Below are positions 4,395 to 13,700 of a DNA stretch of 64,000 bases, piece by piece. Position numbers and translations under genes: made by a program. The DNA is taken from contig NC_088856.1 in assembly GCF_963853765.1 (NCBI RefSeq), forward strand, positions 55,800,001 through 55,864,000. The letters run 5' to 3'. The stretch's first letter is position 1. The number at the start of each line of letters is the position of its first letter. The notes beneath the pieces were generated by a model. That model worked only from the letters and a program-made list of their open reading frames with translations. It had not been told where the DNA came from and did no database searches. Source of the DNA: Magallana gigas. Its lineage: Eukaryota.

Positions 4395-4572
4395 ACATTC
4401 CGCTATTGACGAGGACGATCAAAACTATAACTTCACTTTGTGTACAAAATGGTTAGAGTGTTGGACTTGTTCCTGAGTGCAAATCCCCTGACTTTAACTC
4501 CTGCTTAATAAAAATGACATGTCCGCACATGTCATATTAAATATAAAAGCGGGGGTTAGATTCAACTATTAA

Positions 4573-5456
4573 GGGTGTTATTTACTCAGGGTTTGAGTTC
4601 TCAAATTCCGATTGTTATAAAGTTCAATGTAATGAGTAAAATTTGTTCTAAACACAAGAAGTATTTATGAAATGAATTATTATTGACAAAACATTGAATA
4701 GTTTTACTTTATTATGAAATTAGGCTCAAACAAAAATTGACTTTAAGTCAAACAGAGAAAATTCGGACTAAATTTTGCAGATTTTGTTTTCTGCTAAAAG
4801 TTTTTTGGCAGTAGTCTAATGTTAAAAGTTAGGATTTTATATTTAAGTGTATGTAATTTTGCATATTTTCCCTTAGTTTTACATCACTTATTCATAAAAA
4901 TAATCTTATGGCATGAATAATAAAAATATTGAAAAATGCTTAAAAACGATAAAAGACACCATATCTCAAAAGATCATTGACCTCATATAAATTTTATGCC
5001 AACAGAATAAGGTCAATTTAAGTAGTTCAATACCATAAATGTTTTTGTATTATCATCATTCAATTTTTTGTAAAATTGAATAAAAAATGGGAAGGGATTT
5101 GAAAAATTATAGAGGAAATTCGGACTGAATTATTTTTAAAAATTTATGCTGAAATCTTAATGTTGTGTACTTATTTAGTGCCACTACCATTCATAAAGTG
5201 TATCTTATTTTTTAAAGTGTTTAATTATTTGTGATATTTTTTTGATTAAGAAAATCTCAATCGTAGTGTAAAATTTTATGGGATTTTTCTTGATTTTTCA
5301 ATAAATATTCAATGGCCATTAACTCAAAAAGTAGGTCATTGACCTACTTTTCTGAAAGTGAAAAATAACAATACAAGCAAAGGACTATAACACACAATAT
5401 ATGGTTTTTCATTATCATCAGTGGATTTTTTTTTTCATTCTGAGTAAACGTCATCC
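4573..5456. mobile_element. TTAA-flanked non-autonomous DNA transposon (~880 bp, Kolobok-like)
   Basis: TTAA|gggtgttatttactcag ... ctgagtaaacgtcatcc|TTAA; very AT-rich interior without ORF. Confidence 0.65.
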
Positions 5457-6324
5457 TTAAACACAAAATTTTAAGAATATTGTACAGATATATCAGTTGA
5501 TTAGTTTTAATATACGCTATTTTTTGAGTCCAGATATTTGAATAAAAGGACTTTAAATTCTTTAAACTTAAATTTCAAGAGGAAAAAAACAACTTTGAGT
5601 ATTAGTCTTACCTGTTTTGCTTGTAAACATTGCTGTAATACACGAGTAACTTCCCTTTCGGCTATGATCTCGCTGAACATAGGTGGATCCTGGTTTTGGT
5701 GATTACAAATTTTGTGTGATATTATTGGGCTTCTCCTCATTTATTTGTCTGTAATAATGGTCCTTTAAAATATATATTTAACTATAAATCTTTTTGGTGA
5801 AAATTATTAATGAAAGGAATTACATTATATTTATGTATTTATGCATTTATAGTATGTCCAAAGATCTATGCTGCACATTTGGACGATTTTTAATAAAACA
5901 AATACCTGTCAAAGATGTGCAATTCAAGTACATGAAAGGGTAAATATCTAACATCTTCATTCACTCGTAATCCTTTTTACTTGGAAAAAATTACAGGAAC
6001 AAAAACAAATTTCTTACGGAGATTTATCACGGTGGATTTTGACATCTTTTCTTTATTCGGAAGACACTCTGAATACTACCGCAATTTTTCAACGCTATCA
6101 TTTGGGCCTGTTGCAATACTTGTAGACATCCCCGTGTCATTTTGAACAATGTATTAAAACCTGATAAACTTGAGGGGGCGTTTCAATTGAGATGAAATCT
6201 GGGGTATAGTAATACGTATCTATTAATATCGAGTGATTTAGTAAAATGTGAATCCAGGATATCTTGGGACAGAGTATACAGAAGGAAAGGAGGAATAAAC
6301 ATATAACTACACTAAAAACACTGA

Positions 6325-6470
6325 ACCCCTGCAACTCTAGTCAGGGGCTTTACCACTGAGCTACCATACAGGCCGATATCCACGGTCCATATATCCCCAA
6401 CTACTACATTCCTCCCTCCTTAAATAGTCTTCGACCCCGAAGACACAACACATGTTCACCCTGTCAGGAA
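6325..6470 (-). repeat. tRNA-derived (SINE-like) fragment
   Basis: Minus strand reads ggtagctcagtggtaaagcccctgactagagttgcaggggttc: tRNA-like A box, truncated B box, no complete cloverleaf. Confidence 0.4.
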
Positions 6471-6784
6471 CATTCACTAATATTTGAAATAAATACTTTT
6501 AAAATATTACATGCATAAATTCCAGCAAATAGGACAATATTTTGATAGGGACGAACATTTTAATTCATTAAATAGATATTGGTACTGGCTTATGGACAGA
6601 TGTCAGATTCTATAATAACATTTTAATACACGTAGCTCCCGAGGGTTTCATCTTCCCTGACTCTGTTTAGCTGCATAGTTTTCACAACAACATAAATACT
6701 AATGATGAAAATATAAAACATTTAAAAAGGCATCTAACAGAATCATAAAATAATTGAAGAGGAAGCACGTGGAGGGGGCTTTAA

Positions 6785-9162
6785 TCAAGTCACACAATCG
6801 TTGAGCGTTAGTTCGTTGTAGCACGTTTCACAGACTGGGATCCGCTCCCCGTTAGGTATGGTGATTTGTTGTTGGTAGCAGGATCCGCACACGTTCTCTA
6901 TACAGCGTGTACATTGGAACTGTGAACAGAAACAGTCCTATTATACGGTGGGTTAGGTATATACATGTACATGTAATATACACGCATGGCTATCTACATC
7001 AGACTGTTTAATTCTCCCGTACGTATGTCTTTTTTTTTTATCTTTAGTTATACATCGAAGTTTTTTGCGGTATGAATTATCTAAGTTTTATAAACCTAAA
7101 TCGAGGTACTTGTACCTGCTGTCAATTCTTCAAGATATTGTGTTTTGTTTTTTTAAATAAATCCAAAGGTAATTTTAAAGATTTTCTTGCTAAGTTAGGT
7201 TTTACATACAAATCAATGAATACTTCAATCTTTCATTTGACTATATTCTGTAAAATGTCACTCATTGTTTTTACTTTATGAAATATTCTGAAGAATTGAA
7301 GTATTTAACACTCCTAGCTTCTGTATACTTTACCTTGTGTTCCGATGAGTTGTTCTGCTTCTGACAGACTGCACACTTCCAGTACTGGGGCCGGGGGTTA
7401 CTTGCCTCGTCTCGTACTATTCGCTCCTCTACCTAAAAGTTCATGCCGTATTATGAGAAAGTGTTAATAATAAGACGGATTATATTTTTCATAAAAAATG
7501 GAAACCATACAATTGTGTATTTGATATGATTGATCTCTCTTTTCTGAATTCTTATTCTTGAAAAAAAAAACCCTCTGAAAATCTGGTGGTTTAAGTATTT
7601 TAATAATCTTTTTTTTCAATTTGATTATCAAAGATCTTTTGCATAAAAGGTCAAAACAATCTACCATATCTAAATTTCGGTCGGGCTCGGGCTCCGCAGG
7701 AATTTCCATTTCTTCCTGAGCTTCCAGATCCGTTTGCTGCGTATCTAGCGTTTGTCCAGGCATAGAGTAGCCGGGCGGAGGACTCCGGTACATCTCGTAG
7801 GGTGGGGGTGGGCTGTGGTACCGGATGTTGGAGCGGGCCCGCATCGGGTAGATCAGGTTGGAGCGAGGGCGCAGACGCCGCCGGCTGTCATTCCGCCAGT
7901 TCGAAGTCTCTGTTTCTTTATAGTACTCGGCTGTAACATATATTTAAAATTATTATAAAGAATTTTGTAACTGATGCAAACACTTGCTAAATAACTTGAT
8001 TAAATCTAGTATCATATGAGTAAGTTTGTACACGTACAAAATACAGAAGTTTGTATTATGAAAAATTATGATAAATTTTTATTAAAAATTGCGAGTTGTC
8101 CTTCCGAAGGGATAAATATGTTTAAATTTTCCTTTATAAATTTCAATAAAATGTTTTCACTTGTTATTTTAAAAGGGTAAAAAGGAAGAATTCTCACGGC
8201 AAAAATGTTCTCGACTATTTTTTACTTTAATAAGTTCAACTCTTTGTCACTGACAGTTGTTCATATCAATGTTACATTTTGTGTAGAGTTATGATTTAAC
8301 CTGAGTTTCCTATCAGAGACACTCCCCAGATTCCGCTCCAGATCCAACCAATCAGAAAACAGGACACCATCAGCAGCTGGAGGACCCCAATCACCACCAC
8401 AACGAGGCTGGAGATGTAGCGCTGTTTGGGGGTCAGATCGTCCGTCTTGGCGCAGCACAGAACGGAGAACCCGGATATCATAGTGCCTACAAAGGAGAAT
8501 GGATCATTTACAATGGGAAACTCTGTTGTGTGTATAGATCTTTAGAGCGTTACGGAAAAAATTCAGGTTGACACGCCGAAGCTACCTGTATCCTTAACGA
8601 TGTGTATTACAGTCAATGTACAGACTTGTAATGTAAACCACTATTTATAATATTCAGATCGTTTTATTTTGTATGTATGCAATTACTCGTTTCATTACAC
8701 GTAAATTGTAGAATCTATAATTTGAGGCTATGTTTAAACAAAAAAGGTTGATATTCTACCTTAGTTAAAACAGGTTAGCTCAAATTTTTGTACTAGGTAC
8801 CATAAAAAACAGAGAGAGACAGAGAGAGATGCTAACCCACCCCCACCTTCAACCAACCTCTATCTGCGCATACCATAAGTGGTAGATATAAATAATGCAC
8901 ATCTGAAAAAAGCCTACAGACCTACTCCTGGGAGTAGGAAGTTCGTCATACAGCACACCACGGCCAACTCCAGGGGCAGGATGGGTAACATGATGGCGTC
9001 ATCAATCGAGTCATCGTCATCAACATCCGGGACATCCTCCGTCAGCCAGGAGCGGCGCCTATCAACGTATCGAGGGGGGTCCCCGGGGGTTGAAGTTGGG
9101 GGATCGGCTCCAGGGGTATCGGCGGGGCACGAGGCGGCAGATGCTTGTTCTGTGTTTGACAT
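6785..9162 (-). CDS. Spec3/STUM-family membrane protein with PPxY motifs and C-terminal FYVE-like zinc finger (~308 aa)
   Basis: Exons 9162-8922, 8486-8301, 7930-7665, 7432-7334, 6919-6785; all GT-AG, phases 1,1,0,0, open to TGA. ILPLELAVVCCMTNFLLPGVGTMISG...GVLQLLMVSCFLIGWIWSGIWG is the Spec3/stum hydrophobic signature. C-terminus CAVC-x12-CTRC-x4-CGSC-x15-CETC. Confidence 0.85.
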
Positions 9163-9983
9163 TTCACGTTAATCCAGACAGGAATTTGGCACAATTCATA
9201 ACTTTAGAGCTTTTTTATTGAGTAAGGTGTATTCCATTTTTTCTGAACACAAATTCTTTTGAATTATAACAGCCAAGATTTATCCTCTGTATGGCACATT
9301 CAAGTCAGTTTTTCTCTCTTGAATTTGTTTATCTTTGAATATGAATGAAGCTTTAAAAACCCACACTTAATGAATATATCCTCAAGATTCGACAAATGAA
9401 AATAAAAATAGTCGAGAAATCAATTAAAACCCGACATGCGACTAGCTTCGTACACACTTCGGTAGAGTGAAAGTGACAATTCATCCATAGAAAAATGTTT
9501 TGACAGAAATGAACAGGTTTAAAGGTCGCAAATCGTCTTAGGTTTTGTTCAGTAACTAATTATGTTTGTTTACCCTGTAAAGAGATATTCTGCGGCAGGT
9601 ATTGGGGGTTGCTCCTATGTAGATTTAATGACGTATCAGGCCCCAGATTATCTGACAATGGATTGGAACTAAAGATTTAATATCTCTGTGATAATCATAG
9701 GAAATATGGCGTATCAATAGATAATGCCGATTTAATCCACTGCCGACTGTGATAATTTGCAGTTGTTTAAATGACTTTTGCGGTTAACCGAGTGCGTTAA
9801 TTGTTTGATCTATGCCCTGCACTTCAAACTTCTCAAGACGAACGGTTTAAATTATCGTGTAGGTTGAATAAAAGTCCTGTATAATTCTTCTTATTATTAT
9901 GATATAACGTCAATATTATAACCGAAAACAGTGAACAATGCAGAGATGGGCACTATGCAGATATATCAACGTATAGCATCTCG

Positions 9984-10025
9984 GGGGGGGGGGGGGGGGG
10001 GGGGGTGGGGGGGGTGGGGGGGGGG
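9984..10025. repeat. Poly-G tract (G-quadruplex-prone), with poly-C tracts nearby at ~10257-10272 and ~10343-10362
   Basis: About 40 nt of nearly pure G, in the intergenic region between divergently oriented genes. Confidence 0.85.
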
Positions 10026-10751
10026 TTACTAGCGTCTTATTGGTAGAGAACTGTTTCGCACATCCTTGTTACGATATATTCTCCAACCTCGTGTCTCACT
10101 TTGTTGTTGATGATAAAGGAAAGCTCAGAAAAGTGAACACTTACTTATACAGGCACGTGTATTGACGGCACGACCTTTAATCCTCCCCCTCCCCTACTTC
10201 TTAAGCCACTCAGCACTATCCACACCTAGCGCCACCCATTAATTCCCCCAACCACCCCCCTCCCCCCCCCCCAAAAAAAAAAATAAACTCTCAAGGAGAT
10301 TGAGATTCAGTAAAGTAAGTTACTACAAAGGCATTTTATACCCCCCTCCTCCCCCCCCCCCCCACACACACACACACATATTAGTCACTGATCATAGGCG
10401 TAGGTGGAGGAGGTTTAAATAGCTATAGACATTTTTTTTCTTTCATTTACACACAAACTTATGAACCATATACATACATGAATCATTTACATCCATCATG
10501 CCCCTACCATACAGACAACACAAGTACTGGCAATAAATCTGAATTGTCAAAGTAAAAACACCCATATGATGAAACGTTTGAAAATTTTTGATATAATATT
10601 TAAAAAAATAAATAAATCCCTATTCTCTTTATTTAAACATTTAAGTTAGGTAAAAAAAATCTGTATTAGTTTTAGAATTCTAGCTCCTCTATAGCAATTG
10701 CCGTTATGGCTTCCCATACTGGACACTAGTGAGAGATATGCAGGTACTACA

Positions 10752-13700
10752 ATGGCTATGATTTCCGTGCGTTCTGGACTAGGTCTGTGGTGTATCATCC
10801 TGTCAGCAGGTTCAGTCACACTTACTTTACCCTTTACTCGCTTTAACTTGCAGACTTTTTAGGACAGACTCGTTCTTAAATTATAATTAATCTAAATATG
10901 TTTTTGTAAATGTTCATATGTTTGTGAACAATTTAAAGGAGCATGGTCACGTTTTTGGTCAATTTTTTTTCCAATTTTAATGTTAACTTTACAATGCTTT
11001 AGTAAGGTATTTTTAATAAACAACCAAAATTTGAGTGTCATTCGTTGAGTTATAAGCAAGTTACAGTTCTTACAATTCTTTACTATGTAAACAAAGCATT
11101 TATTTTGTTTACATTTTAAATGCTGAAGGAAAAATTCCAATTTCAAACCTAAAATGAATGTGTTAAACGTAAGAAACTGTTAATTCATGCTGAAAATTAA
11201 TAAGAAGATAACACATCAGCATGAACAAGATTTTTTACCGGTATATTAAACCTATGTAAACAAAAACAGGGCACGAGCCTTGTTTACATATCAAAGAATT
11301 ATGAGCTCTGTATCTTGCTTATTACTTAACGACTGACTCTCAAATTTCATTTGAACATTAGAAATGAATTTCTTAAGCATCTAAATAATAAAAACAGAAT
11401 TTGACCAAACTCGTGACCATGCCCCTTTAACATATAAACTAACTTAATATAAAAGTCCATTTATATGACTTCTCAATATATTTTAGATATTTCAGTGTAC
11501 TTTTTAAGTAACCCTTACGATTGAAAACGTTACCAGAAACACTGGTATTTACGGTTCACACCTACTGATTTTAGTAGTAAAGGATGTATAGACCAGAGCA
11601 CAGCGATAGCCACTGACCTATATATTGTTTGTAGTGACCACGGTTGAGGGGGCGTGTCCGGAGGGGTTTTTCCCGCATGGTGACTCTTGTTACTTCTTCT
11701 CCTCCAGCATGGAAGCTGACTGGATCGAGGCCGGGGTAATGTAAAATTACTGAGGAACGGTAACTCTGTAATATTGAGACCGAGGCCGGGATAATGTAAC
11801 GTTACTAATGAACGGTAACTCTGTAATATTAAAATAGAGGCGGGGGTAATGTAACGTTACTAATGAACGGTAACTCTGTAATATTAAGATCGAGGCCGGG
11901 ATGATGTAACGTTACTAAGAAACGGTAACTCTGTAATATTAAAATAGAGGCGGGGGTAATGTAACGTTACTAAGGAACGGTAACTCTGTAATATTGAGAT
12001 CGAGGCCGGGGTAATGTAACGTTACTAAGAAACACTAACTCTGTAATATTAAAATAGAGGCGGGGGTAATGTAACGTTACTAAGGAACGGTAACTCTGTA
12101 ATATTGAGATCGAGGCCGGGGTAATGTAACGTTACTAAGAAACGGTAACTCTGTAATATTAAGATCGAGGCCGGGGTAATGTAACGTTACTAATGAACGG
12201 TAACTCTGTAATATTAGAATAGAGGCGGGGGTAATGTAACGTTACTAAGGAACGGTAACTCTGTAATATTGAGATCGAGGCCGGGGTAATGTAACGTTAC
12301 TAAGAAACAGTAACTCTGTAATATTAAAATAGAGGCGGGGGTAATGTAACGTTACTAAGGAACGGTAACTCTGTACTATTAAGATCGAGGCCGGGATGAT
12401 GTAACGTTACTAAGAAACGGTAACTCTGTAATATTAAAATAGAGGCGGGGGTAATGTAACGTTACTAAGGAACGGTAACTCTGTAATATTGAGATCGAGG
12501 CCGGGGTAATGTAACGTTACTAAGAAACAGTAACTCTGTAATATTAAGATAGAGGCGGGGGTAATGTAACGTTACTAAGGAACGGTAACTCTGTAATATT
12601 GAGATCGAGGCCGGGGTAATGTAACGTTACTAATGAACGGTAACTCTGTAATATTGAGATCGAGGCCGGGGTAATGTAACGGTACTAAGGAACGGTTACT
12701 CTGAAATATTAAGATTTTACATCGAAGGGCAAACCCCTCTAACTGCTAATAAAGGACCTCGATATAAGAACTCTTCAGTGTATAGAATACAGTATGTCAT
12801 TAATACTCAGGTTTTACTCTACATGTACATTGAAGCAGGCACGGGCTTGGGTGATCAATAATTGAGGTTCAGAGCGACAGATTTTATGACCAAAATTCAT
12901 CCAATCAACGCATTAACGAAAAAAAATAAAGATAATTAGGATGTAATGCTAGGTAAAAATTTATTTCACTGATCTGAATTATCATCTTGGAGGAGAAACA
13001 GATAATTTTGACGTATTGCTCAACAAGTTGTCCTCTTTGCCCCTAGCTTTAATGGAAAATCGTCAAAACCGATTGTAGGTCAGAGGCACTGGAATGTAGG
13101 CGTAAATATACATGTACATACAGATAGCAAAAACAGTGACCTTATAGACGCGATTGAATGACTTCATGACATAGCTATAGGTTAAACTGTCGACAGCACA
13201 TATACAAATAAATGACGTATTTGTAGTATTAAACTTGTTGATTTGTTTGTCTTTTAATATTTTTTTTCTTTTTCAGTTTTTCTGTAACCGATTTAATGGG
13301 GGAGACTTAGTTGCCGTCGAATCGCATTCAGAAAACGAGTTTCTGTATCAAATACTACATTTTATGCGTTCAGATAGTAAGTACCTGTATAATACGATAA
13401 AGTTCATTGATTTTACGTCACGTTAATGACGTAGTGTTAAGACACACGCAGTGTTTGCATAATTATGCGAACTGAAAACAATGTAAAGAAGTTTACGAGA
13501 CTTTGGGCGTACAGATAATTTTTACGTTAATTTTCTAAATATGATATTTCATGCTGTGAACTATTATTAGACAAAGAAATCATCAAATTTTATAGCTTTA
13601 AAAATTGAATGTTTCCCATTACTTTACTGTCTGAAGGAGATTAATGTATACGTAGTGTAAAAAATGGCCGCGACCATTGAGCTTTCGTGGTGTTTTAAAA

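Follow-up and report, generated by a model that had tools for sequence, protein, structure and literature searches.

Spec3/STUM proteins, a family conserved throughout the animals, have been associated with ciliated ectoderm and with proprioceptive mechanosensing; we know of no biochemical mechanism for them. Membrane adaptors that carry multiple PY motifs bind and disinhibit NEDD4-like ligases (PMC12720080). In adaptors of the NDFIP1/NDFIP2 type, it is the closely spaced cytosolic PY motifs that bind WW domains and relieve the auto-inhibition of the ligase (PMC12720080). The FYVE domain of ZFYVE27 (protrudin) lacks the WxxD, RVC and R(R/K)HHCR motifs, yet its binding to PtdIns3P liposomes has been reported (PMC3247280).

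The window analysed here is a stretch of 64,000 nucleotides from Magallana gigas (contig NC_088856.1, positions 55,800,001 to 55,864,000), and all positions below refer to it. The best explanation of the locus as a whole, to which we give a probability of about 0.5, is a five-exon, single-copy gene of a cupped oyster encoding a Spec3/STUM-family integral membrane protein of 308 aa. The protein would be anchored in a membrane by a hydrophobic helical hairpin at about residues 60-147. Two close PY motifs would bind to WW domains arranged in tandem in NEDD4-family HECT ligases encoded in the oyster genome, and the protein would then act as a membrane adaptor of the NDFIP type or would itself be sorted by ubiquitin. 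A C-terminal finger, presumed blind to PI3P, would provide a further surface, where a partner protein or, non-canonically, a lipid could be bound, as opposed to classical endosomal PI3P targeting. The gene is a member of a bivalve orthologue group, and it is this group that arose beside a tandem Spec3 paralogue.

Gene structure, transcripts and membrane domain

The 308-aa model put forward by the sequence-only reading stands: the five minus-strand exons of Table 1 splice into one open frame, which closes with TGA at 6787-6785 and is kept only if exon 1 uses the donor 8922|8921. All four junctions were found in transcript contigs of three studies and in raw poly-A reads. The joints 8485/8921 and 7930/8301 occur in RNA runs X1, X3 and X6. 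The junctions 7665-7432 and 7334-6919, which that reading had set as an RNA-seq check, are both present in RNA, the former as joint 7427/7660 (equal to 7432/7665 when the cut is moved by +5) in X1, X3 and two raw reads of X21, and the latter as joint 6919/7334 in X3, X6 and X21. A single contig crosses exons 1-4, from 9545 to 7359, and the introns flanking the finger exons (7457-7643 and 7083-7269) have zero depth in four of four runs. Upstream of the start codon, exon 1 is 5' UTR as far as 9545-9710 or beyond, with two contigs (X3 record 12 and X1 record 6) continuous from 8921 to 9545 and 9710, and the 3' UTR reaches at least 6712, in a contig that spans 6712-6919 (X6 record 14). Exon 5 is single-copy across the genome, and an Rfam scan of 4500-11000 gave no match. 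An expressed gene that joins a Spec3 domain, PPxY motifs and a FYVE-type finger on one mRNA is real, which we regard as virtually certain. A near-identical 308-aa entry is present in AlphaFold DB, where the search also showed an amphioxus entry (C3Y7X1); queries for the spliced protein were made with single exons, with the 71-aa finger and with a 96%-identical relative (P0089).

Table 1. Features of the oyster Spec3/STUM gene, with positions in the window
Feature	Position	Strand	Residues	Content
Exon 1, coding part	8922..9162	(-)	1-80 and first base of codon 81	disordered acidic N-terminus, PPRY, start of Spec3 domain
Exon 2	8301..8486	(-)	81-143	Spec3/STUM membrane core, second long hydrophobic helix, GWIWS motif
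Exon 3	7665..7930	(-)		disordered linker, probably cytosolic, with conserved block and second PPxY
Exon 4	7334..7432	(-)	232-264	short helix, first CxxC, x12 spacer; finger begins at 7375
Exon 5, coding part	6785..6919	(-)	265-308 and stop	other six Cys of the finger (to 6821), C-terminal helix
PPRY	9070..9081	(-)	28-31	N-terminal
PPPY	7797..7808	(-)	184-187	invariant in 20 bivalve sequences
PPGY	7767..7778	(-)	194-197	PPxY retained in all finger-bearing orthologues, second PPxY nearly invariant
8-Cys finger	exons 4 and 5	(-)	251-297	C-x2-C-x12-C-x2-C-x4-C-x2-C-x15-C-x2-C

Exon 2 alone matched the Pfam Spec3 profile (PF15795) with 54.1 bits against a cut-off of 27, over profile positions 26-84 of 85; the preceding part of the profile, positions 3-24, matches residues 59-80 in exon 1. 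Because these two exons match the Spec3 profile and the joined finger passes the FYVE cut-off, the gene is beyond chance. The full-length AF2 model contains the hydrophobic hairpin of the Spec3/STUM family, with helices at 64-76, 80-92 and 100-147 (pLDDT 77-91), and also gives a helix at 229-241, ahead of the finger. In this model the first hydrophobic segment consists of a pair of 13-residue helices (64-76 and 80-92) on either side of a kink at a P-G-x-G turn, here P-G-V-G. This segment could be membrane-spanning or re-entrant, and a re-entrant segment would place the N-terminal PPRY on the opposite side of the membrane. Both tails are probably cytosolic. For the PY motifs, a cytosolic side is suggested by the adjoining zinc finger; some annelid Spec3 members have PPxY on either side of the membrane domain, which fits a cytosolic placement of both tails.

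PPxY motifs and a candidate link to NEDD4-family ligases

Three PPxY motifs had been described from the sequence, and all three are present as placed, but only the two C-terminal ones proved to be conserved. A PPxY occupies the PPRY site in C. virginica, Ostrea and Saccostrea and is absent from Pinctada, scallops, mussels and Solemya; the N-terminal motif is thus confined to oysters, and it reads PLRY in the 96%-identical relative. PPPY and PPGY lie ten residues apart and are both conserved across bivalves. The first of them is the end of a 25-residue block in exon 3 (R-x-x-S-N-L-I-Y-P-M-R-A-x-S-N-I-x-Y-x-S-P-P-P-P-Y), in which S166, I169, Y170, P171, R173, S176, P183-185 and Y187 are invariant over 20 bivalve sequences, and the block motif was found in the bivalve orthologue group only. 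PPxY recurs in the Spec3/STUM tails of molluscs, annelids and a hemichordate. A count over 40 other Spec3 relatives gave 12 PPxY motifs against 2.3 +/- 1.3 expected from shuffles, an enrichment that is overstated because a composition shuffle breaks up proline runs, and PPxY arises readily in proline-rich disordered tails.

Potential ligands are encoded in the same genome, which has 26 WW matches; WW clusters adjoin HECT exons at C3:32.72 Mb, C6:20.91 Mb, C7:14.36 Mb and C10:19.89 Mb. A complex prediction for residues 160-205 with one HECT-adjoining oyster WW domain (L019) scored 0.05, a value that counts neither way. Binding of the oyster protein to WW domains through its PY motifs has, in our judgement, roughly even odds. 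A role as a NEDD4-ligase adaptor is plausible by analogy with NDFIP, and that the protein is an adaptor rather than a mere substrate is a tentative proposal, with the odds against it. The endosomal or ciliary location suggested by the sequence-only reading is likewise conjectural. Spec3 and FYVE are the only Pfam families assigned to the protein, and no NDFIP family turned up in scans of the five exons, even at E values up to 10.

The main competitor of the adaptor proposal holds that the PY motifs serve only the oyster protein's own NEDD4-type ubiquitination, endocytosis and turnover in lysosomes, as in ENaC subunits, and that the finger and the Spec3 domain hold the actual function, for example in ciliated or mechanosensory cells. 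This joint claim is doubtful. In its favour, all finger-bearing orthologues keep the first C-terminal PY motif in the extended form PPPY-x-M-[YF], similar to the endocytic signal of ENaC (extended PY / YxxPhi), and many small Spec3 paralogues have a single, terminal PPxY only. Against it, two PY motifs ten residues apart throughout the bivalves match the arrangement of multiple PY motifs on which canonical adaptors depend for ligase activation (PMC12720080). The substrate and adaptor roles are, moreover, not mutually exclusive.

A broader form of the adaptor proposal is that the whole Spec3/STUM family consists of PY-motif membrane adaptors for NEDD4-family ligases, and that bivalves extended one member with a FYVE finger that does not read PI3P, as a head that binds cargo or partners. 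We consider this generalization improbable. If true, it would tie what Spec3/STUM proteins do in mechanosensory neurons and ciliated ectoderm to the control of membrane-protein trafficking by ubiquitin. A literature search for STUM with NEDD4 gave matches that looked incidental, as judged by title and term count.

The FYVE-type finger: homology, distribution and competing readings

The joined finger matched the Pfam FYVE profile (PF01363) with 31.3 bits (E 2.2e-7; cut-off 27.8) over profile positions 9-66 of 67, compared with 23.9 bits for exon 5 alone, and a FYVE match was obtained for 12 of 12 orthologous fingers. The best matches of a profile of the finger family were the solved FYVE domains of RUFY1 (5.6e-11) and EEA1 (1.3e-10), followed by Hrs and Vps27; the protrudin FYVE was also among the matches (1x4u, E 0.033). 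An AF2 model of the finger (pLDDT 81.7) gave the same answer in Foldseek, where the top 8 PDB matches and nearly all of the top 30 Swiss-Prot matches were FYVE domains, with probability 1.0 and a TM of about 0.6. Look-ups of exon 5 and of the whole protein in the ESM Atlas returned nothing or only sub-threshold bacterial zinc-ribbon clusters.

RING profiles scored below threshold, at 19.9 bits for zf_RING-like (cut-off 27) and 13.6 bits for zf-RING_5 (cut-off 27.9). In RING domains the spacing between ligands 4 and 5 is x2-3. The x4 found here suits FYVE, not RING, and a RING or PHD identity was rejected, given the sub-threshold scores and the FYVE domains among the best sequence and structure matches.

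The spacing and the three missing signature motifs are as the sequence-only reading described them. All eight Cys and the exact 2-12-2-4-2-15-2 spacing are invariant from Solemya to oysters. WxxD is missing ahead of the first Cys (YWKC here), as it is in 12 of 12 orthologues. The R(R/K)HHCR position reads HKFQCT; no orthologue has both His together, and mussels retain R-K-x-x-C-R. The RVC position reads PVC, and V/L/I/T/K-VC in orthologues, and the Gly that follows the fourth Cys is absent in the orthologue group, Solemya excepted. The finger is, on its profile matches and predicted fold, a true FYVE homologue that has lost the WxxD, R(R/K)HHCR and RVC residues, and classical PI3P recognition is therefore not expected of it. 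The missing motifs are no proof that PI3P binding has been lost, however, because protrudin was reported to bind PtdIns3P liposomes without them (PMC3247280).

The combination of Spec3 and FYVE domains occurs in oysters (Ostreida), the pearl oyster (Pinctada), scallops (Pectinida), mussels (Mytilida) and Solemya. Unionid and heterodont proteins stop just ahead of the finger, inside the preceding helix; their tails align with the oyster helix at this point, and in a gene tree the finger-less proteins of both groups are nested within the same orthologue group. Both the finger and the exon 3 block are absent from the nearest annelid, brachiopod, gastropod and hemichordate Spec3 proteins, and searches of limited reach found no finger-bearing copies outside bivalves. 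Word-indexed searches with the Saccostrea finger and with the Solemya tail and finger returned only the query itself or oysters, and with 5 and 44 candidates they are uninformative on distant kin. It is likely that the architecture is restricted to bivalves, with secondary loss of the finger in Heteroconchia. The suggestion of a lineage-specific architecture is accordingly borne out insofar as it was found in bivalves only; it is not special to the oyster genome and is already in databases. Public entries describe it as 'uncharacterized protein' or under automatic FYVE/Spec3 labels: the orthologues carry precomputed PF01363 and PF15795 matches or, for Pinctada, the UniRef name 'FYVE-type domain-containing protein'. 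Literature searches for Spec3 together with FYVE and by family name found no description of the architecture. The public gene model of Mytilus californianus is truncated before the finger exons.

A second competing reading builds on protrudin and takes the oyster protein for a tether or lipid sensor: its finger would bind a phosphoinositide, PI3P or another, non-canonically, and the protein would so connect the membrane it sits in with endosomes or with the plasma membrane. Protrudin combines a membrane hairpin with a C-terminal FYVE domain that binds PtdIns3P liposomes without the signature motifs (PMC3247280), and protrudin entries also appear among the AFDB-cluster matches of the full-length model. 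Mussel fingers are strongly basic, with 12 K+R against 6 D+E. Against a tether, the oyster finger carries no net charge (4 K+R and 4 D+E), which argues against electrostatic membrane binding, and the histidine pair of the pocket is missing in every orthologue. Over the full length, the structures of the two proteins match very poorly (TM 0.17), and the oyster protein shows neither an FFAT motif nor a coiled coil nor any other feature of protrudin. Taken together, these observations make a tether unlikely.

Class-I WW domains of YAP/Yorkie, Kibra, MAGI and WWOX proteins also bind PPxY. The oyster protein might then be a membrane dock for Hippo-type or scaffold signalling and not for ubiquitin ligases, and many of the WW matches in the genome do not lie beside HECT exons. 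Nothing singles these partners out, however, and multi-PY membrane proteins are mostly clients of the NEDD4 family, which makes this reading very improbable. An annotation artefact, with the finger exons part of a different transcript or seldom used and the true protein stopping after exon 3, could appeal to the shortness of these exons, which the ORF listing missed (as the sequence-only reading had remarked), and to the one truncated mussel model, but it is rejected, since the joints between exons 3 and 4 and between exons 4 and 5 occur in several runs, no alternative joint out of exon 3 was found in the RNA data of the runs examined, transcript-derived orthologous proteins bear the finger and a public 308-aa model exists.

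Comparison with known systems

The bivalve branch gives the Spec3/STUM family two readable handles, the invariant PY motifs and a conserved FYVE finger that lacks the PI3P motifs. These handles suggest concrete partners, for example ligases with WW domains, or a ligand of the finger that is not a lipid. The distribution of the finger amounts to a natural experiment, in which half of Bivalvia retains it and in the other half the protein stops just short of it. The locus also provides a further example of a FYVE fold that has persisted over several hundred million years in the absence of its lipid-binding signature, and of short terminal exons that are missed in some public gene models, as in M. 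californianus.

With NDFIP1/NDFIP2, TMEM127 and SUSD6, the oyster protein shares the form of a small integral membrane protein with several close PY motifs, which in the oyster protein would lie on the cytosolic side. It differs from NDFIP1/2 in having two membrane helices, not three, and in the added zinc finger, and it has no sequence relationship to these adaptors. Canonical PI3P-binding FYVE domains (EEA1, Hrs, Vps27 and RUFY1) have an identical Cys spacing, and the predicted oyster fold superposes on them at 2-3 Å over 54-60 residues.

Protrudin has in common with the oyster protein a hairpin and a motif-less C-terminal FYVE domain (PMC3247280), although the structural and sequence echoes are weak. 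Homology between the two is detectable in the finger only; the membrane domain is a different one, and the oyster protein is without FFAT, coiled-coil and Rab-binding regions. To our knowledge, protrudin has no PY motifs. The closest relationship is with the Spec3/STUM family itself (PF15795; sea-urchin Spec3, Drosophila stum and human STUM), of which the oyster protein is a clear member, with two long hydrophobic helices and the GWxWS-type motif common to its relatives. To this family plan it adds the C-terminal FYVE-type finger and the LIYPMRA...SPPPPY block, both seen only in the bivalve orthologue group.

Gene structure and transcription

When the five exons are joined on the minus strand, they yield a single open frame of 308 codons; the exon 1 donor at 8922|8921 preserves the frame, whereas two adjacent GT sites disrupt it. 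Exon joining and translation also showed that the sequence-only reading had described the exons, PPxY sites, eight-cysteine spacing and absent FYVE motifs accurately throughout. The gene region occurs in sequencing runs from at least 11 studies, and in RNA-type runs about one-third of the sampled words were present, roughly the exonic share. RNA was mapped to positions 5400-11000 from transcript contig sets of three studies (X1, X3 and X6) and one run of raw poly-A reads. All four splice joints have CT..AC ends, corresponding to GT..AG on the minus strand, and one contig (X3 record 12) reaches from 9545 across the first three exons and into the fourth. Every mapped run had zero depth over the introns flanking the finger exons (7457-7643 and 7083-7269), and no alternative joint out of exon 3 was seen in the mapped RNA runs. 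Junctions 7665-7432 and 7334-6919 had been flagged for an RNA-seq check, with the objection that transcripts might stop before exons 4-5. Both junctions are present in RNA contigs and raw reads; the objection therefore fails, the architecture is carried on one message, and the gene model stands. The gene is real.

Features of the gene and its product (window positions or protein residues)
Feature	Position	Strand	Evidence or role
Exon 1 coding	9162-8922	minus	start of frame
Joint	8485/8921	minus	X1, X3, X6
Exon 2	8486-8301	minus	Spec3 profile match
Joint	7930/8301	minus	X1, X3, X6
Exon 3	7930-7665	minus	part of 308-codon frame
Joint	7427/7660 (equal fit at 7432/7665)	minus	X1, X3, two raw reads
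Exon 4	7432-7334	minus	first part of finger
Joint	6919/7334	minus	X3, X6, one raw read
Exon 5 coding	6919-6785	minus	rest of finger
PPRY	residues 28-31	minus	translation
PPPY	residues 184-187	minus	translation
PPGY	residues 194-197	minus	translation

The 5' UTR is continuous with exon 1 over at least 380-550 bases. Within it lies an upstream ORF of 11 codons (9164-9199, minus strand; ATG at 9199-9197) whose TGA ends one base ahead of the main ATG at 9162, an arrangement that could permit reinitiation-type control. On the 3' side, contigs end near 6712; low RNA depth further downstream (6335-6521 and 5774-6334) may represent a longer 3' UTR or a separate transcript. Three short segments (5401-5460, 5867-5898 and 5993-6027) have very high RNA depth (word depth up to ~350), with reads that exit both ends into varied sequence and agreement down to 0.41, the pattern expected of a repeat that many loci express; they have no Rfam match.

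Membrane domain and FYVE-type finger

Exon 2 alone matches the Pfam Spec3 profile at 54.1 bits (cut-off 27). Exon 1 contributes the profile positions preceding this match, and the continuation of the profile from one exon to the other provides independent support for their junction. In the full-length AF2 model, a disordered N-terminus is followed by helices at 64-76 and 80-92, with a kink at P-G-V-G, and then by one at 100-147. Beyond these come a disordered linker bearing PY motifs, a short helix (229-241) and the confidently modelled finger (pLDDT ~92).

The finger has eight cysteines in residues 251-297, spaced 2-12-2-4-2-15-2, and a phase-0 intron divides its coding sequence into exons 4 and 5; the genome contains a single copy of the finger exon. 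Exon 5 alone scores 23.9 bits against Pfam FYVE, and exons 4 and 5 together score 31.3 bits (E 2.2e-7, cut-off 27.8) over profile positions 9-66 of 67. A profile of 12 orthologous fingers best matches solved FYVE domains, led by RUFY1 (5.6e-11) and EEA1 (1.3e-10), with further matches to Hrs, Vps27, FGD5, endofin, ALFY and ZFYVE26. Foldseek with an AF2 model of the finger (pLDDT 81.7) likewise returned FYVE domains as top PDB and Swiss-Prot matches (probability 1.0, TM ~0.6, rmsd 2-3 A). Pfam scores for RING-like, PHD and B-box identities were far under the cut-offs.

The canonical PI3P signature is missing: YWKC rather than WxxD precedes the first cysteine, HKFQCT occupies the R(R/K)HHCR site, and PVC the RVC site. 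The oyster finger is also net charge-neutral, which counts against simple electrostatic membrane binding. Caution is warranted, since the protrudin FYVE domain lacks the same motifs yet is reported to bind PtdIns3P liposomes (PMC3247280).

Bivalve distribution and history of the finger

A phmmer search of 1.84 billion representatives with exon 2 gave 74 matches, with full-length finger-bearing proteins in Saccostrea, Pinctada, Pecten and Solemya and among transcript-derived proteins; a profile search extended this set to Ostrea edulis, Crassostrea virginica and Mizuhopecten. It also recovered a transcript-derived relative of 308 aa (P0089), identical to the window model at 297/308 residues. 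Three Logan proteins are from mussels. The eight cysteines and their spacing are invariant across finger-bearing relatives, and WxxD, both pocket histidines and RVC are absent from every one compared. The public Mytilus californianus model LOC127731818 (P0093, 258 aa) ends ahead of the finger; the transcript-derived mussel protein P0091 (343 aa), 90% identical to it, has a complete finger, and that annotation therefore seems to have missed the terminal finger exons.

Precomputed Pfam matches list FYVE and Spec3 in eight finger-bearing relatives, and Spec3 alone in Pinctada, P0089 and a further relative, P0092; a near-identical 308-aa entry forms its own AlphaFold DB cluster. The concern that the architecture is already widespread and annotated thus holds in part: it is widespread in bivalves and in public databases, but with automatic labels only. 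The literature search found no paper pairing Spec3 with FYVE and none describing this bivalve protein. The architecture is a lineage-restricted variant of two known domains, in databases yet undescribed. The sequence-only proposal of a possibly lineage-specific endosomal or ciliary membrane adaptor for HECT ligases is partly supported: it stands as to lineage restriction; its functional part is by analogy, and the architecture was already in databases.

Relatives with the membrane domain and PY block but no finger occur in Unionida, Dreissena, Mercenaria and Ruditapes and among four heterodont-like transcript proteins. Most finger-less bivalve proteins terminate in an IQEEEIRR-like motif that aligns to VEERIVR in the oyster protein; this stretch opens exon 4 and belongs to the helix immediately preceding the finger. 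A maximum-likelihood tree unites all 21 bivalve sequences (support 86/91) and places two annelid proteins next to them. The 12 finger-bearers fall together on one side of a branch supported 96/94, such that the tree requires only a single change, although the alignment included finger columns, which may bias it toward this split. Protobranchia lie outside the remaining bivalves in the accepted species tree. Since the finger is found in both Solemya (Protobranchia) and Pteriomorphia, the simplest history is one truncation on the heteroconch stem, with a gain as the alternative. Outside bivalves, the closest Spec3 proteins found, from Owenia, Dimorphilus, Ridgeia, Lingula, Haliotis and Saccoglossus, lack the finger.

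An AFDB cluster match, C3Y7X1 (401 aa, uncharacterised), which we take to be an amphioxus protein, aligns with the full-length model over residues 32-305 at 14% identity (E 1e-4); it may be a distant analogue or a membrane and FYVE protein of separate origin.

A finger-less Spec3 paralogue lies in tandem on the same strand ~48 kb before the window start (L005, C4:55751823-55752044). Over the membrane exon it is a 97% match to P0107, a Magallana gigas/angulata cluster (223 aa, "uncharacterized protein"), and it terminates in PPPPY. The finger-bearing gene and matching paralogue have consecutive accessions in Pecten; in Mizuhopecten both are listed with a longest contig of 1,099,665 bases, which suggests that they share one scaffold. 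The two genes appear to stem from an old tandem duplication.

PY motifs and candidate ligase partners

The second PPxY is present in all finger-bearing relatives, and the N-terminal one is restricted to oysters (PLRY in P0089). A near-invariant block, R-x-x-S-N-L-I-Y-P-M-R-A-x-S-N-I-x-Y-x-S-P-P-P-P-Y, was found only in this bivalve orthologue group. PPxY also occurs in 12 of 40 other Spec3 relatives (P0018-P0073) against 2.3 expected from composition shuffles, which break up proline runs. These PPxY-tailed relatives are from molluscs, annelids and one hemichordate.

Three features are established: the membrane anchor, the conservation of the PY pair, and a FYVE fold that lacks the PI3P signature. 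Judging from its zinc finger and PY motifs, the C-terminal tail would be cytosolic; some annelid relatives have PPxY both before and after the membrane domain, which suggests that both ends may be. The genome encodes NEDD4-type ligases, with WW clusters adjoining HECT exons at four loci. Given these ligases, the PPxY enrichment among Spec3 relatives and the precedent of known adaptors, the oyster protein is most likely a client or adaptor that engages NEDD4-family ligases through its PY motifs, and the finger would serve as an extra interaction surface. Multi-PY membrane adaptors bind NEDD4-family WW domains and relieve auto-inhibition (PMC12720080); the oyster protein is likewise membrane-anchored with a conserved PY pair.
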